From positions 1 to 64,000 of the forward strand of contig MCFE01000449.1 in NCBI GenBank assembly GCA_002104905.1: 64,000 bases of DNA, read 5' to 3'. The notes under the pieces were generated by a model. The model did no database searches and was not told where the DNA came from. It saw nothing but the letters and a program-made list of their open reading frames with translations. The stretch comes from Basidiobolus meristosporus CBS 931.73 (Eukaryota; Fungi; Basidiobolomycota). Of the stretch, positions 2,900-34,313 are shown piece by piece; positions within the stretch are counted from its first letter, which is position 1, and each line of letters opens with the position of its first letter. A program made the position numbers and the translations under genes.

Positions 2900-5190
2900 A
2901 CTCATATACTCCTCTGTAGAATCACCCCACTTTATTTGCTTACCCACTACTACCTTGGGTATTAAACATATAGTTTGCATCAAAACAAAATATGGCCTCC
3001 TGCTTACTAACTTCTACAAATGCCCACACCTGCCACAATTGACATACTTCTATCACCTCAGCTTTACAGCTTTTTAGTGTGATACTTGCAAAGCTGCCAT
3101 ATACATTGTACTGCTGGTACCATAAACATCTTGCAAGCATATGCTGTGTTGCTGCCACTTCTGCTATGAGTACCTTCTGAATATCTGCAAAGTACTTTTT
3201 GGTATTTAGCCATATATTCCTTTTCCCTGCTGGGTTCTAGTCCCCCTTATAGGTGTGATCTGGCTCTTGTTTGTGTGAATTCCATATTGAATGTGTAGAA
3301 GTTGGCTTGTGACCAAGAGAAGTCCAGCATACTTTGGTAGAGTTTTCCTAATAAAAAATAGTTGCTTGCTGCACCTAACCCAACTTTGCATTACTTAACT
3401 GATTACCTGTGAATTGGGGCTGCTTAGCTTGTTAATGCCATAGGCATAGGTGTCTCCATGTATGCATCTGTCCTTAATATTTTCCAACTCTTCCTCTATG
3501 TGCCAACTCATCACATCCATGATGGACTTGAAGGAAATATTGCTGATGAGATTGGGTTATGGTAAAACATGCAACTTGACTTGTCTTCCTATCTCCCCAC
3601 ACATTTGCTCCATAGGAAACTCCCAAAAGGTGAAGCAAGGTCCAATATTCTCTGCACACTGGGCAAGATGGAGTAGAGAATGGATACACTAACAGCAGAG
3701 ATCTATACATTCAGTTTCATGTTTGTAGTATAGCCACTCAAATCCTGTTACTAACCCCTTGCATAGCAGCAGTAGATATGTCAAGTTGGCATTGGTGATC
3801 TGCTTTAGGATATTAATTCCTACAATGTCCCCATATGACTCCAATGCTTCCAAAGTACTCTTGAGGGGAATAGCTTCAGAATGCCACTTGAATAAATAAG
3901 TTTCCAGCTTGTCCAGTCTTTGCATTTATACTGATGCAGATGCATCTGAATATTGATTGGAGCCCATGAGAAGTACTGAGGGTAGCAGATACTCTGTAAT
4001 ATCTTGCCAATTCTTTTAAATTTCTCTTGTATTTTGAGGGGCCCATTTGTATTGAGATACCCCATGTGCAACTTGGTCATTAGTATAGAGATATTGTGAA
4101 AAGCAAATGCATTGCTCCCAATGGTAAACTTTTGCTCCAACAGATACCCTCTATCTTAAGTATCTCTGGTTACCAATTAATTCCATATTCTGGTCAATGG
4201 CTTATAGCTTGCAAACTTTGCTGCAATTGCATGCTGACTTCTACATGCTCTCTCAGTTGGAAGTGATGTTCTTAGTGTTGGTGTCTGGGTGATAATAATA
4301 TGTGTGAGTTATGGAGTAAATCCCCTGGATTGTGCACATTTGACAGCAATGCCATCCATTGTGCATGGAAAAGCCAGCTATCTTGCTGATGGCTGGGGTG
4401 TCTACAATGCAGACAATACTATGAGCTTTGACATAACAGCCATTTACGGTTATCCTGCTGGAAAGCATACAAAATTCATCCAGCAATGAATACAGGTAGC
4501 TATACAGGTTAGACAGTGCTATAGGCACAGATACCAGTGAGACTACCATCAGATTTTTGCTTGGACACCATAAGATAGGTGGCAGATTCAGATTGATGAG
4601 GATCAGTGGCCAGCAGGATTTACTGGTAAAGTACTTGCATAATGAGAATCTATCAAGTGCTAATGTTAAGGCATGGTCATACATACATTCAAGGTAGCCC
4701 TTGCTTCTTTGCTGTTTGTAATGTTTGCCATCAAATATATTAGAAATATTTGCGCTAGATTGATAATGAGTGCAGTACTTTACAGCCTTGCAATATTTGT
4801 TGGACTGCATGAGCTTCTTTAGATAGGGTATTACTGGACTATATCCAGAGTGTTAACAATGCTTTCCCTCAATGATGGTGAATTCCTGACAATTTGGACA
4901 AGTTGCAATGGTGGCATTTTTAGATGTTAATGTCATGCAACTGCTAACACATGCTGGAATCAGGAGAGTCTCTGGGTCATGTGTTGCCTGCTGCATGATG
5001 GTTGTCCACTTGTACCATGTACATGGTAAGTTGCATCCTGGAGTGATTTTGGCAAGAAGTAGTAATAAATCCTCAAAGCCCCCATTACTGATATTAGTGG
5101 AAATGAGCCACTTCTCTAGCCACAACATTACATCATCCACCAGTAGATGGATTACTGGGCTCACTTGGCTCCATAAAGTATCCTTGGTAT
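2900..5190 (-). pseudogene. CACTA/En-Spm-type (Transposase_21-like) transposase, disrupted
   Basis: ORF 4253-4810 reads LALDRFSL...SCWPLILINLNLPP...NLMVVSLV...LYSLLDE...DTPAISKIAGF..HNGWHCCQMC. ORF 4853-5164 has the N-terminal CVSSCM...CPNC motif. HL...ENIGP..FW appears at ~3620-3680 in another frame. Boundaries are approximate. Confidence 0.8.
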
Positions 5191-26978: not shown

Positions 26979-28618
26979 ATGGAAAAAGAACACAGTTGGG
27001 ATAAAGAAGCCGAGCGAAGGATAGTGAGAAAGTACGACATTCGTATTCTACCTCTCATTCTTATCCTCTACACTTTTTCGATTCTTGACCGTATAAACCT
27101 GGGTATCTTTTCACCTCCCATATTGCTCGTTGCCAAGCCCGGAAAATAACGCGACTTTCACAGGGAATGCCCGCTTATACAACCTAGAGGAGGATTTGAA
27201 CCTCAAGTCCGGAGAATTTGGGTGGTGTCTCTCCATATTCTTTTTCGGTAAGCCCCGAATCCTAGCTTTACTCTCCGCTGTTGAAATAATAACTCCTTGG
27301 AATGTAGGCTATATCATTTTCGAGATTCCCTCGAACAATTTCCTGAAGCGGGCCCGGCCTTCACGCTGGATTAGTAGAATCATGGTCAGCTGGGGCATCA
27401 TTTCCAGCTGTGGGGCCGCTGTGCACAACTTTGGTGGCTTAATGTCGGTCCGGTTCTTTTTGGGCATTGCTGAAGCGGGGTAAGGATTGGTGCGAAAGTT
27501 CACAACGTCCTGCAGTCCATTAACAGGTTCCTCCTTCCCTGACACCAGATTTTTCCCCGGTGTTATATATTACTTCTCTTTTTGGTACACGCGCAAAGAA
27601 CAAGCCACCAGAATCGGCTTCCTGTTCGCTATCTCTCTGCTAGCTAGTGGTTTTAGCGGGATCCTGGCCTATGCGATCAGCCATATGCACAACAACCTAG
27701 GACTCGCCGCCTGGCAGTGGATCTTCCTCATCGAAGGGATTCCTTCCATCGTTTTTGGTATTCTTACCTTGTAGGTATCCATTTCACTTCTAGGCCAAGT
27801 ACATCTCAATGCTCATCTACCGTCTTATATCAAGTTTCATCCTTCCGGATTTCCCCGAGACCGTTAGCTGGCTAACCGAGGAGGAAAGGGAAATCGCCAT
27901 CAAGCGCTTGGAAATGGAGGGGACCATCGCATCCGATACCAAGTTCGACCGCGGCCAATTCCTGGCCTCGTTCACAGATGTGAATGTCTTACTCTACCTC
28001 GTCCTCTACTTTACCGTGTTGACTCCATCTGTGACCCTGTCCATGCTTCTACCCACCATCATCTCTTCTCTGGGCTTCACCAACGTGACCGCACAGTTGC
28101 TGTCCACACCGCCCTACGTGGTCGCCTTTTTCAGCACCATCGCGATCACCCATCACTCGGATAAGATAATGCAGCGTGGCATCTATATCATGACCTGTGC
28201 CACCTGCTGCATCGTCGGATTCATCCTGTTGATCGTACTCAACGGGGCCTGGGTTCTGTACGGGTGTCTGGTGTTCATCGCCATCTGCTTGTACGTTTGC
28301 ATGCCACTTTGTTTCGCGTGGATCTCCAACAACGTGAGGGGCTCTACCAAGGTGGCCACCAGCACCGCCCTGGTGTCGGCGTTTGGTAACATCGGCGGGG
28401 CGGTTGGAGGGCAGTTTTTCCGAGCCGAAGAAGCACCACGATACCAATCGAGTCACATCATCTTCATCTGCCTGCTGGCGTTGACGGTGATCATCTCCTT
28501 CACTCTTCGCATACGATTCAAGCGGGAGAACGATCGGATCGCCCGGCGGGCCTCAGGCCTCTCGAAAGATCTGGAGAAGTCCGAGTACGGCCAGCTGATG
28601 CAAAAGATGGTGTTGTAG
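26979..28618 (+). CDS. MFS transporter, anion:cation symporter (allantoate/nicotinate permease, Dal5/Tna1-like) family, 5 exons
   Basis: ERRIVRKYDIRILP...LDRINLG/NARL, YIIFEIPSN, RFFLGIAEAG/FFPG..YY.SFWYTRKE, WQWIFLIEGIPS, LPDFPET..WLT.EER. Four short GT-AG introns splice in frame. Confidence 0.92.
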
Positions 28619-29034
28619 GTAGGGTGAACTCGTGTCAACCTGCACACCACACCATATTCCATCCTATCTCACCATACATCATAGCAACCATCATCACCAT
28701 CATCACCATCATTCTCATCATCATCATCAAGCATTAGTCACGACTCGAACCAGCATCTTCATCTCAATATTGTAGGAACATCTTTTCAATAGGATAAATT
28801 ACTTGTAATGATTTGCTTTGGACGTAGCATGATCTCGTAGACAAGTGGGGTATATCAGACATCAATTACGGGGGGGGGACATTAAACATTCGGGGATTAT
28901 GTCAAAACGGATTAAATTGAGGAAATTCAGTGATGCCGTTATTAGCCAAAACAAAGCGATGCGTGTTCAAATGATCAAGGCATGAATGGAGGGGGACGGG
29001 GACGGGGACAGGTCCGGAGATGAGGATAGGATGA

Positions 29035-30380
29035 TTAGTTGTCCGGAGGGCAATCAGGCTTGCGAATCTTGCCAAGGGAGATCTTGGAGACGTAGCCTTT
29101 GTCGTTGAGGTTCTTGACGAAGATCGCGTTCTCCAACTCCGTCTGACGCACCTTGTCCAGATCGTAGTTCATCATCTCACTGAAGCTGATGTTGATTCCT
29201 CTGGGTGGACGGAGCTTCAGGAGCTGGGTGGTGCGATCGTTGGATCTGGGGAGTCCCAAAAGGGCGGCATAGTCTGGTCGGTCACAGGCGGCGATCTTCT
29301 TCAATAAGTGCTTGTTCCTATGGTTGGGGGACTGGTTCTCCTTGTTATGGGGGAGGGTTCTCTTTCTTCTTCTCTGGGGGTTGTTGGGCACACTTGGGTT
29401 CTGGGTGACGATGGTGGAGCTGGGGCTTGTGGAGTATCGGTAGCAGAGACCGGCCGTGCTAAGAACGCTGCGTACTGTGACTTGGAATGGGGGTAGGTTG
29501 TCATTCGTCGTGGCCCTGCGACCGCCCACCCGGTTGACACCGCTGTAGCTATTGTAGATGGTGGGATGGGCGTTTTGCCAGTCCGACCAGATCTTGTCGA
29601 TGAAGGCGTGATGAAGGAAAAAGATGGGGCTAACGAGGAAGGAGGGTTAGTGCTTGGGTTCGATCGTCAGGCGTTTCGTGGGTGATGTACTTACTCACTA
29701 GGACTGGCCATGTACATGAAGTCCCCACCAATGTTGTTGTGCACAGTACCATGTGGCCCTGGCTCGATGTTGTTTCTCAGTTGATCAAAACTGGATGATG
29801 TTCGAATGTAGCTATTAATGGATTCGGGGGAGTAGAAAGCTGAGATCGTGTTCCCCGAGTCCCAGATGCGCTGAAGGCAGTGGCTGTTGGGAAGCGGAGA
29901 CCGCCAGTTGGCGAATGGACCCGTAACAAGGCAGTTGTCACTTTTCCTGCCGTTACCGCCAAACCATTTCCAGATGGGGCTGGTTTCTGGTGCCTGGGAG
30001 TCCAGAGTCCAATCCTGTTTAGCCCGCGTTAATTAGAGTAAACCACAACGCAGAGGTGAGAAGTCATCACTTACCCAATATGGCAATACCACATTCGGAT
30101 TGATCTGCTGGAGAGCCAGCTCGAAGTTCTTGATGTACTGGCGATGCCAAGGGAAGAAGGCAGGGGTAGAATGGGCGTAAGGGACGTAGTTCCAATGAAT
30201 TGCGACTATCTGGTCGTATCTGCCGCTCTTCTTGAGAGCCTGGACGGCGGAAATAAATGCGTTTCTTTCCGCAGTCGAGATTTGGCGAATCTCTTTGCGC
30301 GTCACAGTTCTCTGGCACTGAGCCGAGGTGCTACTGAAGGAAGCACACGCCAAAACCAGGGCGCAGACGATGAATCTCAT
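29035..30380 (-). CDS. Secreted tyrosinase / type-3 dicopper protein (406 aa, 3 exons)
   Basis: Exons 30380-30075, 30014-29695 and 29629-29035 (1221 nt). Signal peptide, RKEIRQ, CuA H...AHSTPAFFPWHR, LPYWDW, CuB PHGTVHNNIGG...DPIFFLHHAFID. TATATAAA lies about 65 nt upstream. Confidence 0.93.
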
Positions 30381-31340
30381 GCTAGAACAAATGAAAAGAA
30401 AAACGAAGCGGGATTGATGTTGAACCAACCCCCGGTCGGCCATGTTTATATAGACGACTGGTGCGAGTGACAAGCCGCTGCAGCAATAATATCGAGCAGG
30501 TTTGTTATGTTTGTAATTTTCCTGGAACGAAGAAATCATCATTAGCATTGACACTCTCCCGTACACCCCCACATGAGTAAATTCGGCAGCGACTACAGTC
30601 AAGATAGAGCAAATTAATTTGGAATTAGATGTAACCGGTTCTTGCATTATTGTTTGGTTTAAATGAGCAGTTTTGGCCGAAGCAGCGCTAAAAATAGAGT
30701 CACTTGGGAATATTAACCCTAATATGCCACCCATTATTGCCACTAAATCGTGCTCGTTTGTGGATGAAAGTTAGGAGATCTACCTACTCTGGCCAGAAAT
30801 CATTTGAAAGGTCGAATGGTGTTTGCAGGCGTACATTGTGCTGGTGTATATTAATTGGATACATTAGATGCCTTCCAGTCAACCCATAAATGGCTGAGTC
30901 AAGCAATTCATTGAATTTTCCCGATCTAGGCAACATTAAACAAGGCTCGCTACACATACGCAATATTGTTTGAATTGAATTTAGTCTGAGCGTGCTACGT
31001 GGCTATCTACCCAAGCTCATGTTATCAACCACTGTGTGCCTTGGGAGGGATCGGTAGAACTCTCAATTATTCCCCGGATACCTTGGTTTGCTGTACGATC
31101 ATGCATTGGCCTTATGCTACGTCTGCTGGCGTATTCCAAAGCTCACCTGAAGATTGCGCACAATTGTCTCGTATTTCTAATCTGCTTAACATCCCGGCAA
31201 TTGGATTATCCTGCATGAGTTTTGTGGTGGTGACCAGTTTTCCATGAGACCAAGCAATCAACTGATGATTGTAGCAAGATTCTCCCTGAAAATAGATGGG
31301 ATTGAGTCAGGTTTATCTTGCTTCGAGTGCTGGATTATTT

Positions 31341-31396
31341 GATCATTCTGGTGACCATTCTGCCGACCATTCTGCCGACCATTCTGCCGACCATTC
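31341..31396. repeat. 12-bp tandem repeat (GACCATTCTGCC) between the divergent tyrosinase and peroxiredoxin genes
   Basis: Three perfect units from 31353, a partial fourth, and one degenerate unit at 31341. Confidence 0.9.
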
Positions 31397-31580
31397 AATC
31401 TATCCCCTGGTTTCCTCACCAGTAGGACGTTGATTTACATCATCCATTCATCAAGTTGCGGCTCCCTTCACGAGGATTGTTGAACAATCCTGATCACGGG
31501 TAAGACCAAAGAAACACCACCCACCCACCAGCCTTGTTTAAATACTCCCCTTGTTTACCAACAGCAGGCATAATTCACTC

Positions 31581-32120
31581 ATGTTGCGAAGCTTGCTACA
31601 CCCGATCTCTCGTCGTTACGCCACCGTCACCCCCTCTATCAAGGTGGGCCAGCAGATCCCTAATATCGCGTTGCAGGAGGCTGCTCCGTACAACGAAGTC
31701 AACGCCTTTGACGCACTAAAGCTTTACGAAAAAGCCCTCGTCCTGGGCTCGCCTGGCGCCTTCAACCCAATCGACTCCAGAGCTCAAATTCCAAGCTATC
31801 TGGATCACATGCATGATCTGGCCTCCTGCGGGGTGGACATGCTGGTCTTCGTATCGGTGAATGACGCGTTTGTGACCAAGGCCTGGGAGGAGTCCTTCAA
31901 TGTTGACAGCAGCAAGGTCAGATTCCTTGCCGACCCCAAAGGGGAATTTGTTAGGTCCATCGGGCTCCAAGAGCACTGCAGCCTCAACACCCAACCGTCG
32001 GCCAGAAGATTCGCCATGATCTTGGAAAGAGGGAAGGTGAAGCAACTCTTTGTAGAGCCTGAGAATGGGCTGAGCTGCAGCTATGCCCCCTCCATTGTTC
32101 ATCATCTCCACCACGGCTAG
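31581..32120 (+). CDS. Prx5/AHP1-type (type II) peroxiredoxin homolog lacking the peroxidatic Cys, with a probable mitochondrial presequence (179 aa)
   Basis: IKVGQQIP, PGAFNPIDS (canonical PGAFTPxCS), VSVNDAFV..AW, RFLADP.GEF, RRFAMI, GLSCSYAP. The N-terminus MLRSLLHPISRRYA is Arg/Ser-rich with no acidic residues. Confidence 0.9.
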   Translation: MLRSLLHPISRRYATVTPSIKVGQQIPNIALQEAAPYNEVNAFDALKLYEKALVLGSPGAFNPIDSRAQIPSYLDHMHDLASCGVDMLVFVSVNDAFVTKAWEESFNVDSSKVRFLADPKGEFVRSIGLQEHCSLNTQPSARRFAMILERGKVKQLFVEPENGLSCSYAPSIVHHLHHG

Positions 32121-33238
32121 ATCGATGGCAAGCCTACCACAGCACACCAAATACACCTGTGGCAATAAGTTGAGACTGACTATATGCAATGTATGCTGGT
32201 GATGACGAGATGACTATATGCTATGTACATTGGTTAAAATAAACAAGTTACGTTCGATGATGACTCAGCCCCTTTTACACGGACAGGCGCCATTCTCCAG
32301 ACATCACATGAGCCTTGGTTTCAGACCCAGATGCACACACCCTGGACCTCATCGCACGTGACATGGCGAGACCGTGAAAGCGTAATAAGTTCGAAGAAGA
32401 ACCAGGCGCTAGGGGCTTTCCGAAACGGTTAATTCTAACAAGGTTATCAATCCGTTTCCTTGATTGGCAAGCCACAGAGACAGGACTGCTTTAACAGGCA
32501 ATCTCTTGTTCTCGAGCACGGGTGGGTATACATGGAAATCAGTTCCAGATGAAAGGGCACTCGATTGAGGCTGCCGAGCGAGGCTGGTGGATCAGATATG
32601 GCTTTCGTGGAAGGTTCCATGTCGATAGAGTTTTCGCGAATATGTTCGAGTGGGTGGTGATCTGCTGTTGACCTGATCGACTGGCCCTTCTGGCCGATTG
32701 AAGTTGATCCGTATCCGAAGGCGGACAATGCAAACATTCCTGGAACAAGTCTGCACATATCAAGACTCCCAGTCCCTATCATCAATAGGGAATACAATCT
32801 ACTCAAACATTTCTATTTGCAACGATATCCCGGCTCACGTATTCCCCTAATCCACTGTGGCATTGTGTGGTGTAACAAAATGGCTGTGAACTGTTTAGCG
32901 CAACTAACGATACCCTGTAGCACGAATGTATATTTCGGGATGGATTGACTCCGAGAAAGTCCAGAATCAGGTTATTTCGGAGATGAATGGGATGCCATAC
33001 AGTGTTCGAGGGGTGTACCAACTTTCGTGGCAGGTGACATCTGGTAGATGAACAAAAAGGTGTCTACATGTGAGAGGATGAGGTAATGCAGTAAAGCGTA
33101 CGAACAGTAACAAGTCAGGAATAGTTCACAATCGAAGATATACATAGAGAATTTAGGAGGGGTTGGGGTAACTCGGTCGTACGTGGCTGCCTCAAGAGGC
33201 GCTCAGCTGGACCTTTCGTAAGGGGAAACTTGGTATTT

Positions 33239-34313
33239 TCATGATGACGTCTTAGCGGCCATTCTGCACTCCGGGAGATGCTCGCCCCTGTACTTGATGA
33301 TATACGCTCCATCTCCCTGGCTGCTAACGGTCTTATTTACAGAGCAACCTTTATGCCAGTTGGCACATTTGTAGTAGGTGGACCTACAGAGAAACGTCGA
33401 TTAAGTACGATGGGTTTGTTGGGATCGTGGGAGAGTTGGGGATTTACCTTAGACCTGTCTTCTTCTGGATGGTGTTTCCGTTGTTTAGCCAGACGTAGTT
33501 GTCCAGGTAGGGGAATTCCTTGGTCTCCACTATCATGGAGATCGGAAGCATCGCCTTGCGGTTTCTCTTTTTCTTGTCTGGTTTGGAGTGGGGAAACTGG
33601 CTGGCATTCGAGTTGGGTGCCAGGGGGGTAGCGCTGTTGTGGATGGAATCTAGCGAATTCGAAACTGGAATCAACCCTGGAATGGCGGGTGCGGCAATCG
33701 AGGTGGGGGAGATTAGGTTGGGGAATCCAGGTATAGTAGGTGAGGAATCGGTACTGGGATGAGATAAAAATGAATCATTTTCAAGGGCGCTGAAGAGGGT
33801 TGGCGGGGATGCAGTGTCACTACTGGAGAAATATAAATACACATGCAACGATCGGGTATCTTCGAAACGGGAGCCTTACCTGTCGTTGGAGGTCATTGCA
33901 CTACTGAAGTTCGCGTAGTCCGGGAAGTCAGAGAAGTCCGGGCCTTGGGGGAATTCTGCTACGGCGAATGGGTCAGGCTCAATTCGGAGCCGAGTGTTTT
34001 TCCCCATGTCAAGGAGTTCCGGGAATAGTTCATCTCTGCCTCTCTTTGTCCCAGGCTCGGGCCATAAACACATCGATGGATTGCTTTGCTCATACATCAT
34101 CAGGTCCAGTTGCATGGAGCGAAGCCTGGTCTCTTCGGTTTTCCGTTTATCCTCTTGTAACTTAGATTGAAGGATCAGCTTGAGTAGTTCGGGCTGGTTA
34201 GAATAGTGGGAAAGTAGATCAACGAGCTCAAAGCGAGGGCCAGGTGGGGAAAATTCGGGAAGTGAATGAGCTCTCTCTGACTTGTGGAAAAAGGGAGGAT
34301 TGTTACCGGTCAT
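33239..34313 (-). CDS. WRKY-like zinc-finger transcription factor of the fungal WxNNGNT type (317 aa, 3 exons)
   Basis: Exons 34313-33880, 33822-33448 and 33383-33239 (954 nt, GT-AG). The spliced C-terminus reads DNYVWLNNGNTIQKKTGLRSTYYKCANWHKGCSVNKTVSSQGDGAYIIKYRGEHLPEC. Confidence 0.85.

Follow-up and report, generated by a model that had tools for sequence, protein, structure and literature searches.

The first 64 kb of contig MCFE01000449.1 from Basidiobolus meristosporus CBS 931.73 (assembly GCA_002104905.1), which we refer to as the window and in which positions are those of the record, contain an uninterrupted open reading frame (ORF) of 179 codons running from an ATG at 31581 to a TAG at 32118–32120 (Table 1). 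The ATG at 31581 is the earliest in-frame start codon after an in-frame TAA at 31539. The product matches the Redoxin family of Pfam (PF08534, E = 5e-20, 72 bits against a cut-off of 26.6), and its top relative of solved structure is human PRDX5 (E = 8e-27), to which residues 18–175 align in HMMER with short gaps only and an unbroken frame. Its AlphaFold2 model (mean pLDDT 81.8, pTM 0.81) finds its best Foldseek matches in the PRDX5 structures 2wfc, 1oc3 and 1hd2 (TMt 0.84–0.86). By the Pfam assignment, the similarity to PRDX5 and the fold, the protein is a member of the Prx5 subfamily. An earlier reading of the window from its letters only (the sequence-only reading) had described an intact Prx5-type ORF here and suggested a structure prediction; the frame, the family match and the PRDX5 alignment bear out the description, and the prediction gave a Prx5 fold with PRDX5 as the nearest solved structure.

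The deposited B. meristosporus gene model (P0001; 157 amino acids, window 31638–32108, L002:3001-3471) is short at both ends, extending from Ile20 to Leu176, and thereby omits the putative presequence and the final three residues, in contrast to the B. ranarum model, which is full length. An exact look-up of the full 179-residue product in public assemblies returned no entry, the 157-residue deposited model being the one recorded, and the look-up listed no gene call derived from transcripts for this protein. No additional peroxiredoxin copy was found when the protein was compared with the entire 64-kb window by tblastn. An antisense ORF at 31716–32189 was rejected as a shadow of the coding frame (tblastx identity of 60% versus 73%). 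The upstream neighbors (26979–30743) are an MFS transporter and a tyrosinase gene (minus strand) that are syntenic with B. ranarum, and a WRKY-domain gene on the minus strand follows downstream (33239–34313).

Table 1 Features of the pseudo-peroxiredoxin locus in window coordinates.
Feature	Position	Strand	Basis or remark
Candidate cis-regulatory element, 19-nt block CTGATCACGGGTAAGACCA	31490–31508	+	Same 19 nt at the corresponding site in B. ranarum (upstream alignment)
TATA-like block TTAAATAC, 43 nt before the ATG	31538–31545	+	Conserved in both species; putative role
Prx5-type pseudo-peroxiredoxin CDS, intron-less, 179 amino acids plus stop	31581–32120	+	ORF, translation, Pfam, PRDX5 match, AlphaFold2/Foldseek
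Putative mitochondrial presequence, residues 1–13, RRY before AT	31581–31619	+	Basic, acid-free, amphipathic
Active-site loop P58–S66, PGAFNPIDS	31752–31778	+	Aligned with PGAFTPGCS of PRDX5 and the canonical paralogs
Q69 in place of His (PRDX5 His51)	31785–31787	+	CAA; Gln in both species
Loop before the catalytic Arg, residues 125–142, relaxed	31953–32006	+	Sliding-window identity 20–53% versus 93% in the canonical pair
R143, retained catalytic Arg (PRDX5 Arg127)	32007–32009	+	AGA here, AGG in B. ranarum
C166, retained PRDX5-type resolving Cys (Cys151)	32076–32078	+	In GLSCSY, compare PRDX5 GLTCSL; TGC here, TGT in B. ranarum
Possible polyadenylation signal AATAAA, 118 nt past the stop	32238–32243	+	Putative role

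Peroxiredoxins carry the motif PxxxT/SxxC, which the loop PGAFNPIDS lacks. Its Asn62 (codon AAC, 31764–31766) and Asp65 (GAC, 31773–31775) fall on Thr44 and the peroxidatic Cys47 of PRDX5 in the HMMER alignment, and we refer to the protein as the Asp copy. The canonical Basidiobolus paralogs described below encode the Thr and the Cys with ACT and TGC, and the change from Cys to Asp hence takes two substitutions. The catalytic Arg and the PRDX5-type resolving Cys are present (R143 on Arg127, C166 on Cys151) and are kept in the ortholog from B. ranarum. Two other residues of the site are lost: Gln69 takes the place of the His51 equivalent, and the second Arg, PRDX5 Arg124, three positions ahead of the catalytic one, corresponds to Ser140 in the Asp copy and to Phe in its B. 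ranarum ortholog, in a column where Arg is at least 90% conserved. The loop with its GAC codon, the retained Arg and resolving-Cys segment and the need for two substitutions had all been noted in the sequence-only reading and stand after codon reading and alignment with PRDX5.

The rarity of these replacements was assessed with a HMMER scan of 1.84 billion proteins (representatives of clusters at 50% identity), which yielded 2228 matches at E ≤ 1e-3. The alignment holds the best 150 of these matches and five word-search matches (155 proteins) in addition to the query; once the query, P0001 and the ortholog P0002 are set aside, 153 compared sequences remain. Thr or Ser together with Cys occupies the two active-site columns in 149 of the 153, and the pair of Asn and Asp occurs, among the aligned best 150 of 2228 and the word-search matches, only in the Asp copy and its B. 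ranarum ortholog. The same set has His at column 69 in 143 of 153 sequences, but Gln is also found there in eight active-looking relatives, for which reason Q69 carries lesser weight. Cys at column 166 is present in only 52 of the 153 sequences drawn from the best 150 of 2228 and the word-search hits. In the Asp-type proteins of both Basidiobolus species the family residues Val57, Thr/Ser62, Cys65 (97%), His69 (93%), Cys90, Met99 and Ala126 are replaced by Ser, Asn, Asp, Gln, Phe, Thr and Ser, respectively. Retained in the Asp copy are Pro58, Gly-Ala-Phe 59–61, Pro63, SVND 92–95, FV 97–98, Trp102, Asp118, Arg143 and Glu159. Judged by established peroxiredoxin chemistry, a site that has lost its thiolate, Thr, His and second Arg would not credibly reduce peroxide. 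The Asp copy should accordingly be regarded as a Prx5 member by descent and fold for which, as the PxxxT/SxxC motif is missing, pseudo-peroxiredoxin is an apt name and peroxiredoxin is not.

A homology search for orthologs with the same Asp, which the sequence-only reading had proposed, led to a B. ranarum protein of 185 amino acids (P0002) that is 73% identical to the Asp copy and contains the loop PGAFNPLDS, in which both the Asn and the Asp recur. In both species the Prx gene follows an MFS transporter and then a tyrosinase on the opposite strand, and these neighbors align at the protein level. Asp65 is encoded by GAC in both genomes, and three other residues are kept across a synonymous codon change, namely N62 (AAC in B. 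meristosporus, AAT in B. ranarum), R143 (AGA/AGG) and C166 (TGC/TGT). Four-fold degenerate sites in conserved codons (n = 55) are 25.5% identical between the orthologs, which is the random level expected at saturation; codon positions 1 and 2 are 82% identical. A maximum likelihood (ML) estimate for the pair, which is a single pairwise comparison with saturated dS, gives dN of 0.175, dS of 2.95 and ω of about 0.06, and the canonical pair has dN of 0.12–0.14 and ω of 0.05–0.10. As the NG86, LWL85 and YN00 methods are unusable on saturated synonymous sites, we rely on the ML estimate and on the raw site identities. They support clear purifying selection on the Asp copy and maintenance of the gene.

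That the Asp copy reflects an error of sequencing or assembly, or is a functionless, decaying pseudogene, can practically be dismissed: the truncation of the deposited gene model at both ends would fit such a reading, but the same Asn and Asp at the syntenic locus of an independently sequenced species rule out a sequencing error, both species have an unbroken ORF, its product has stayed 73% identical over a divergence that has randomized four-fold sites, and upstream elements are conserved. The sequence-only reading had itself thought a single sequencing error unlikely, which the B. ranarum genome upholds, and had pointed to a dN/dS near 1 as the mark of decay, which the ML estimate contradicts. 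Its broader proposal of a maintained non-catalytic peroxiredoxin that serves as a chaperone, scaffold or subunit of a mitochondrial complex survives in its first half: the ortholog, the saturated dS and the losses from the pocket indicate a maintained protein without peroxidatic residues. The second half, with its roles of chaperone, scaffold or subunit, is a conjecture on which the preserved dimer interface and the heterodimer model described below have some bearing. Judging from these comparisons, the Asp copy is very probably a maintained, peroxidase-dead Prx5 paralog.

The conserved noncoding elements lie close to the gene. The 19-nt block occurs once in the window, where 0.02 occurrences are expected by chance; it is found upstream of the ortholog too and is absent at both canonical-paralog loci. 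Together with the TATA-like block, it looks like a promoter element, and the conserved blocks argue for a regulated, live promoter, which is the one, indirect, indication of expression. A 12-nt tandem repeat (unit GACCATTCTGCC, about 3.7 copies, 31353–31396) lies in the intergenic region, roughly 190 nt ahead of the Prx start codon, and a blastn comparison showed no conserved counterpart of this repeat in B. ranarum.

Both species also possess a canonical Prx5 with the loop PGAFTPGCS and a presequence-like N-terminus (P0003 in B. meristosporus, P0004 in B. ranarum). The canonical genes have two introns at positions shared between the species (L003:3034-3099 and 3485-3544; L004:3034-3093 and 3479-3546), whereas the Asp copy has none. 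In lacking introns that the canonical gene elsewhere in the genome has, the Asp copy resembles a retrogene; a poly(A) remnant or target-site duplications would hardly have survived a divergence at which four-fold sites are saturated. Canonical intron 1 follows codon 11, within the presequence, and adjoins the site at which the Asp copy is six residues shorter. An ML tree of 53 Prx5 proteins gives the Asp pair a support of 100/100 and groups it (88/91) with the canonical Basidiobolus pair and with Prx5 proteins of Zoopagomycota (Dimargaris, Piptocephalis). The stem of the Asp pair is long, at 1.4 substitutions per site against a comparison value of 0.45, and its tips are short (0.28 and 0.19). 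Constraining the four Basidiobolus proteins to one clade improved the likelihood slightly (+1.0) and was not rejected (p-AU 0.56). In the simplest history, the mitochondrial-type Prx5 would have been duplicated, possibly by retroposition, within the Basidiobolus lineage and prior to the split of the two species, with a burst of change after it and a return to constraint.

In fold and length the Asp copy matches PRDX5 and the canonical paralogs, with identities of about 38% to PRDX5 and 42–45% to P0003, and it shares with them Pro58, the catalytic Arg, the resolving Cys, the SVND and FV-KAW motifs of the dimer interface and a presequence-like N-terminal extension. It differs from them in the changes of Thr to Asn, Cys to Asp, His51 to Gln and Arg124 to Ser or Phe, in its relaxed pocket loop, in its intron-less gene and in a C-terminal extension with His. 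The sequence-only reading had described the N-terminus as a presequence of mitochondrial type, and its features fit this putative assignment: residues 1–32 contain no Asp or Glu, the basic residues are R3, R11 and R12, the hydrophobic moment is 0.74, and residues 1–14 are disordered in the AlphaFold2 model (pLDDT below 50). The pattern MLR...RRYAT is kept in B. ranarum, and RRY|AT fits the R-3 type of presequence cleavage motif. We infer that the Asp copy is imported into mitochondria by means of this short presequence of about 13 residues. As the canonical paralogs have the same type of N-terminus, the presequence would be an inherited feature and not special to the Asp copy.

Constraint is distributed unevenly along the protein. 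Residues 35–120 and 144–165 are conserved as well as in the canonical pair or better, and in the helix comprising residues 65–80 and the segment 95–115 the Asp pair is more conserved than the canonical pair. The exception is the loop 125–142, which we take, from PRDX5, to be a wall of the peroxide pocket. Its low identity within an otherwise conserved protein indicates that the constraint imposed by the substrate pocket was released and that the constraint on the remainder was not. Several His and Asp residues appear to have been gained and are conserved in both orthologs, namely DHMHD at 75–79 (31803–31817), His174 (32100–32102) and His178 (32112–32114). They are not found in the canonical pair, and H78, H174 and H178 are not common residues at their columns among the 153 compared sequences; H76 is frequent in ordinary Prx5 proteins (29 of 153). 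Position 83 (31827–31829), Lys in most compared sequences, holds Cys in one of the two orthologs and His in the second, and the B. meristosporus Asp copy ends in a His-rich tail, HHLHHG. Were the two helices adjacent, the gained residues could make up a metal site.

When the mature forms of the Asp copy and of the canonical paralog were modeled as a complex, the ipSAE was 0.89 in three runs, against 0.00 for the best control. At least 95% of the contacts agreed between runs, and the partner pLDDT was at least 89. The mark applied to this score is attained by 51 of 78 solved complexes and by 2 of 108 mismatched pairs. The modeled interface comprises 20 residues (36, 59–63, 94–95, 97–98, 100–102, 105, 119–120 and 135–138) and is presumably the A-type interface of Prx5 dimers. 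Fifteen of these 20 residues are identical to those of the canonical paralog, as opposed to 41% identity elsewhere; the interface residues are also among the most conserved fold motifs of the family. The heterodimer score may reflect a memory of solved Prx5 homodimers, and the prediction does not distinguish a homodimer from a heterodimer. In these models, dimerization of the Asp copy is structurally plausible.

Combining these findings, we favor with moderate confidence a lineage-specific pseudo-peroxiredoxin that acts by binding, as a Prx5-like subunit that dimerizes, is insensitive to peroxide and may pair with the active paralog. According to this model, the intron-less gene would descend from an early duplication of the mitochondrial-type Prx5 of Basidiobolus, and purifying selection would have kept it after the loss of peroxidase chemistry. 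Its product would enter mitochondria through the short putative presequence. In the folded protein, the carboxylate of Asp65 would pair with Arg143 as a Cys-sulfinate would, and this pair would keep the active-site helix fully folded. Binding would take the place of catalysis, in a homodimer or in a heterodimer with the active Prx5 paralog, and the Asp copy would serve as a constitutive, peroxide-insensitive subunit or adaptor.

The main rival to a passive subunit is a new enzyme or metal-binding protein built on the Prx5 scaffold. A neofunctionalized pocket made up of N62, D65, Q69 and R143, perhaps with DHMHD 75–79, Cys/His83, His174 and His178, would bind a metal or small ligand or catalyze a reaction other than peroxide reduction. 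Considering (i) the identity of the Asn, Asp and Gln in both species despite saturated divergence, (ii) the stronger conservation of the helix 65–80 and the segment 95–115 in the Asp pair than in the canonical pair, (iii) the retention of H78, H174 and H178, uncommon in the compared sequences, in both orthologs, together with Cys or His instead of the usual Lys at position 83, and (iv) the long stem followed by slow tips, which fits a functional shift, this reading has points in its favor. However, the other wall of the pocket is only 20–53% identical, which speaks against a precisely shaped substrate site, and the frequent occurrence of H76 in ordinary Prx5 proteins weakens the case for the His residues. 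It also counts against such a pocket that we know of no thioredoxin-fold chemistry that uses an Asp at the peroxidatic position, and on balance we regard this rival as rather unlikely.

Another reading, which we hold to be unlikely, is that the Asp copy is a fixed mimic of a hyperoxidized peroxiredoxin, in which the Asp65–Arg143 pair locks a sulfinate-like state and the protein pairs with the active mitochondrial Prx5 or with readers of the oxidation state, or else that it is a mitochondrial metal-binding protein with a His/Asp patch, akin to Sco1. If the former is true, the sulfinate-like Asp copy would be a constitutive, peroxide-independent signal or regulatory subunit. The sequence-only reading had stated that Cys-to-Asp replacement serves as an experimental mimic of the hyperoxidized state, and this is the case for the C54D variant of Arabidopsis 2-CysPRX, which is used as a pseudo-hyperoxidized form (PMC7346168). 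That variant and the Asp copy are alike in having Asp at the peroxidatic position and thus a fixed negative charge at the place of the sulfinate (PMC7346168). The engineered Cys-to-Asp proteins, however, are laboratory mutants of typical 2-Cys (Prx1-type) enzymes, which form decamers, and the remainder of their active site is intact. The Asp copy, in contrast, is natural, selected and of Prx5 type, and it is also devoid of the Thr, the His and the second Arg. The decamer-based chaperone switch of typical 2-Cys peroxiredoxins is not known for Prx5-type enzymes, and the analogy with the sulfinate mimic may therefore not transfer.

A functional parallel to the favored role of a binding subunit may be the mitochondrial mTXNPx of Leishmania infantum, which is reported to have a chaperone role unrelated to peroxidase activity (PMC3203189, PMC6368585). 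It resembles the role proposed for the Asp copy in being a mitochondrial peroxiredoxin with an important function reported to be independent of its peroxidase activity (PMC3203189, PMC6368585). The two proteins differ in that mTXNPx is a typical 2-Cys decamer with catalytic cysteines, whereas the Asp copy belongs to the dimeric Prx5 subfamily and lacks the catalytic Cys.

That the Asp copy is still a thiol enzyme appears distinctly improbable. In this case, Cys166 would support a one-Cys peroxidase, or it would be a resolving or relay thiol to which the sulfenic acid of the canonical Prx5 passes oxidizing equivalents. Both orthologs keep Cys166 across a synonymous change, though this column has Cys in only one third of the compared sequences, and the heterodimer with the canonical paralog is structurally plausible in the models. 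On the other hand, Cys166 stands outside the activating environment of Pro, Thr and Arg, residue 166 is not part of the modeled interface contacts, and the canonical paralog, having a resolving Cys of its own, needs no donor subunit. Furthermore, Cys166 may be retained for packing only.

Peroxiredoxins are increasingly viewed as signaling and chaperone proteins too, and much of the evidence comes from engineered Cys-to-Ser and Cys-to-Asp mutants. The Asp copy is an evolved, conserved Cys-to-Asp Prx5, and the surviving active paralog provides an internal control; it represents a natural test of the Prx5 fold without peroxidase chemistry. The scope is narrow, as the gene is known from only two species of Basidiobolus. 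The protein raises the questions of its binding partners, of pairing with the active enzyme and of selection for a sulfinate-like charge. Text searches of the open literature for natural pseudo-, inactive or peroxidatic-Cys-lacking peroxiredoxins retrieved no description of such a natural protein, including one with Cys-to-Asp, and searches for Basidiobolus peroxiredoxins and transcriptomes retrieved nothing relevant or usable. A look-alike search of the ESM Atlas with the Asp copy returned ordinary Redoxin clusters only.

The Prx5 family itself shows other sporadic natural losses of the peroxidatic Cys. It is replaced in four of the 153 compared sequences, three times by Ser (P0058, P0101, P0127) and once by Leu (P0142), all from metagenome or Logan contigs. 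These proteins are like the Asp copy in this loss and differ from it in having Ser or Leu instead of Asp at the Cys position; P0058, P0101 and P0142 also keep the Thr, which P0127 does not. P0058, whose cluster has three members from different sources, is probably real. Among the matches, a protein of 1075 amino acids from Gregarina sp. Poly1 (P0008, EukProt) aligns with the query in four separate places, which suggests four tandem Prx5-type domains.
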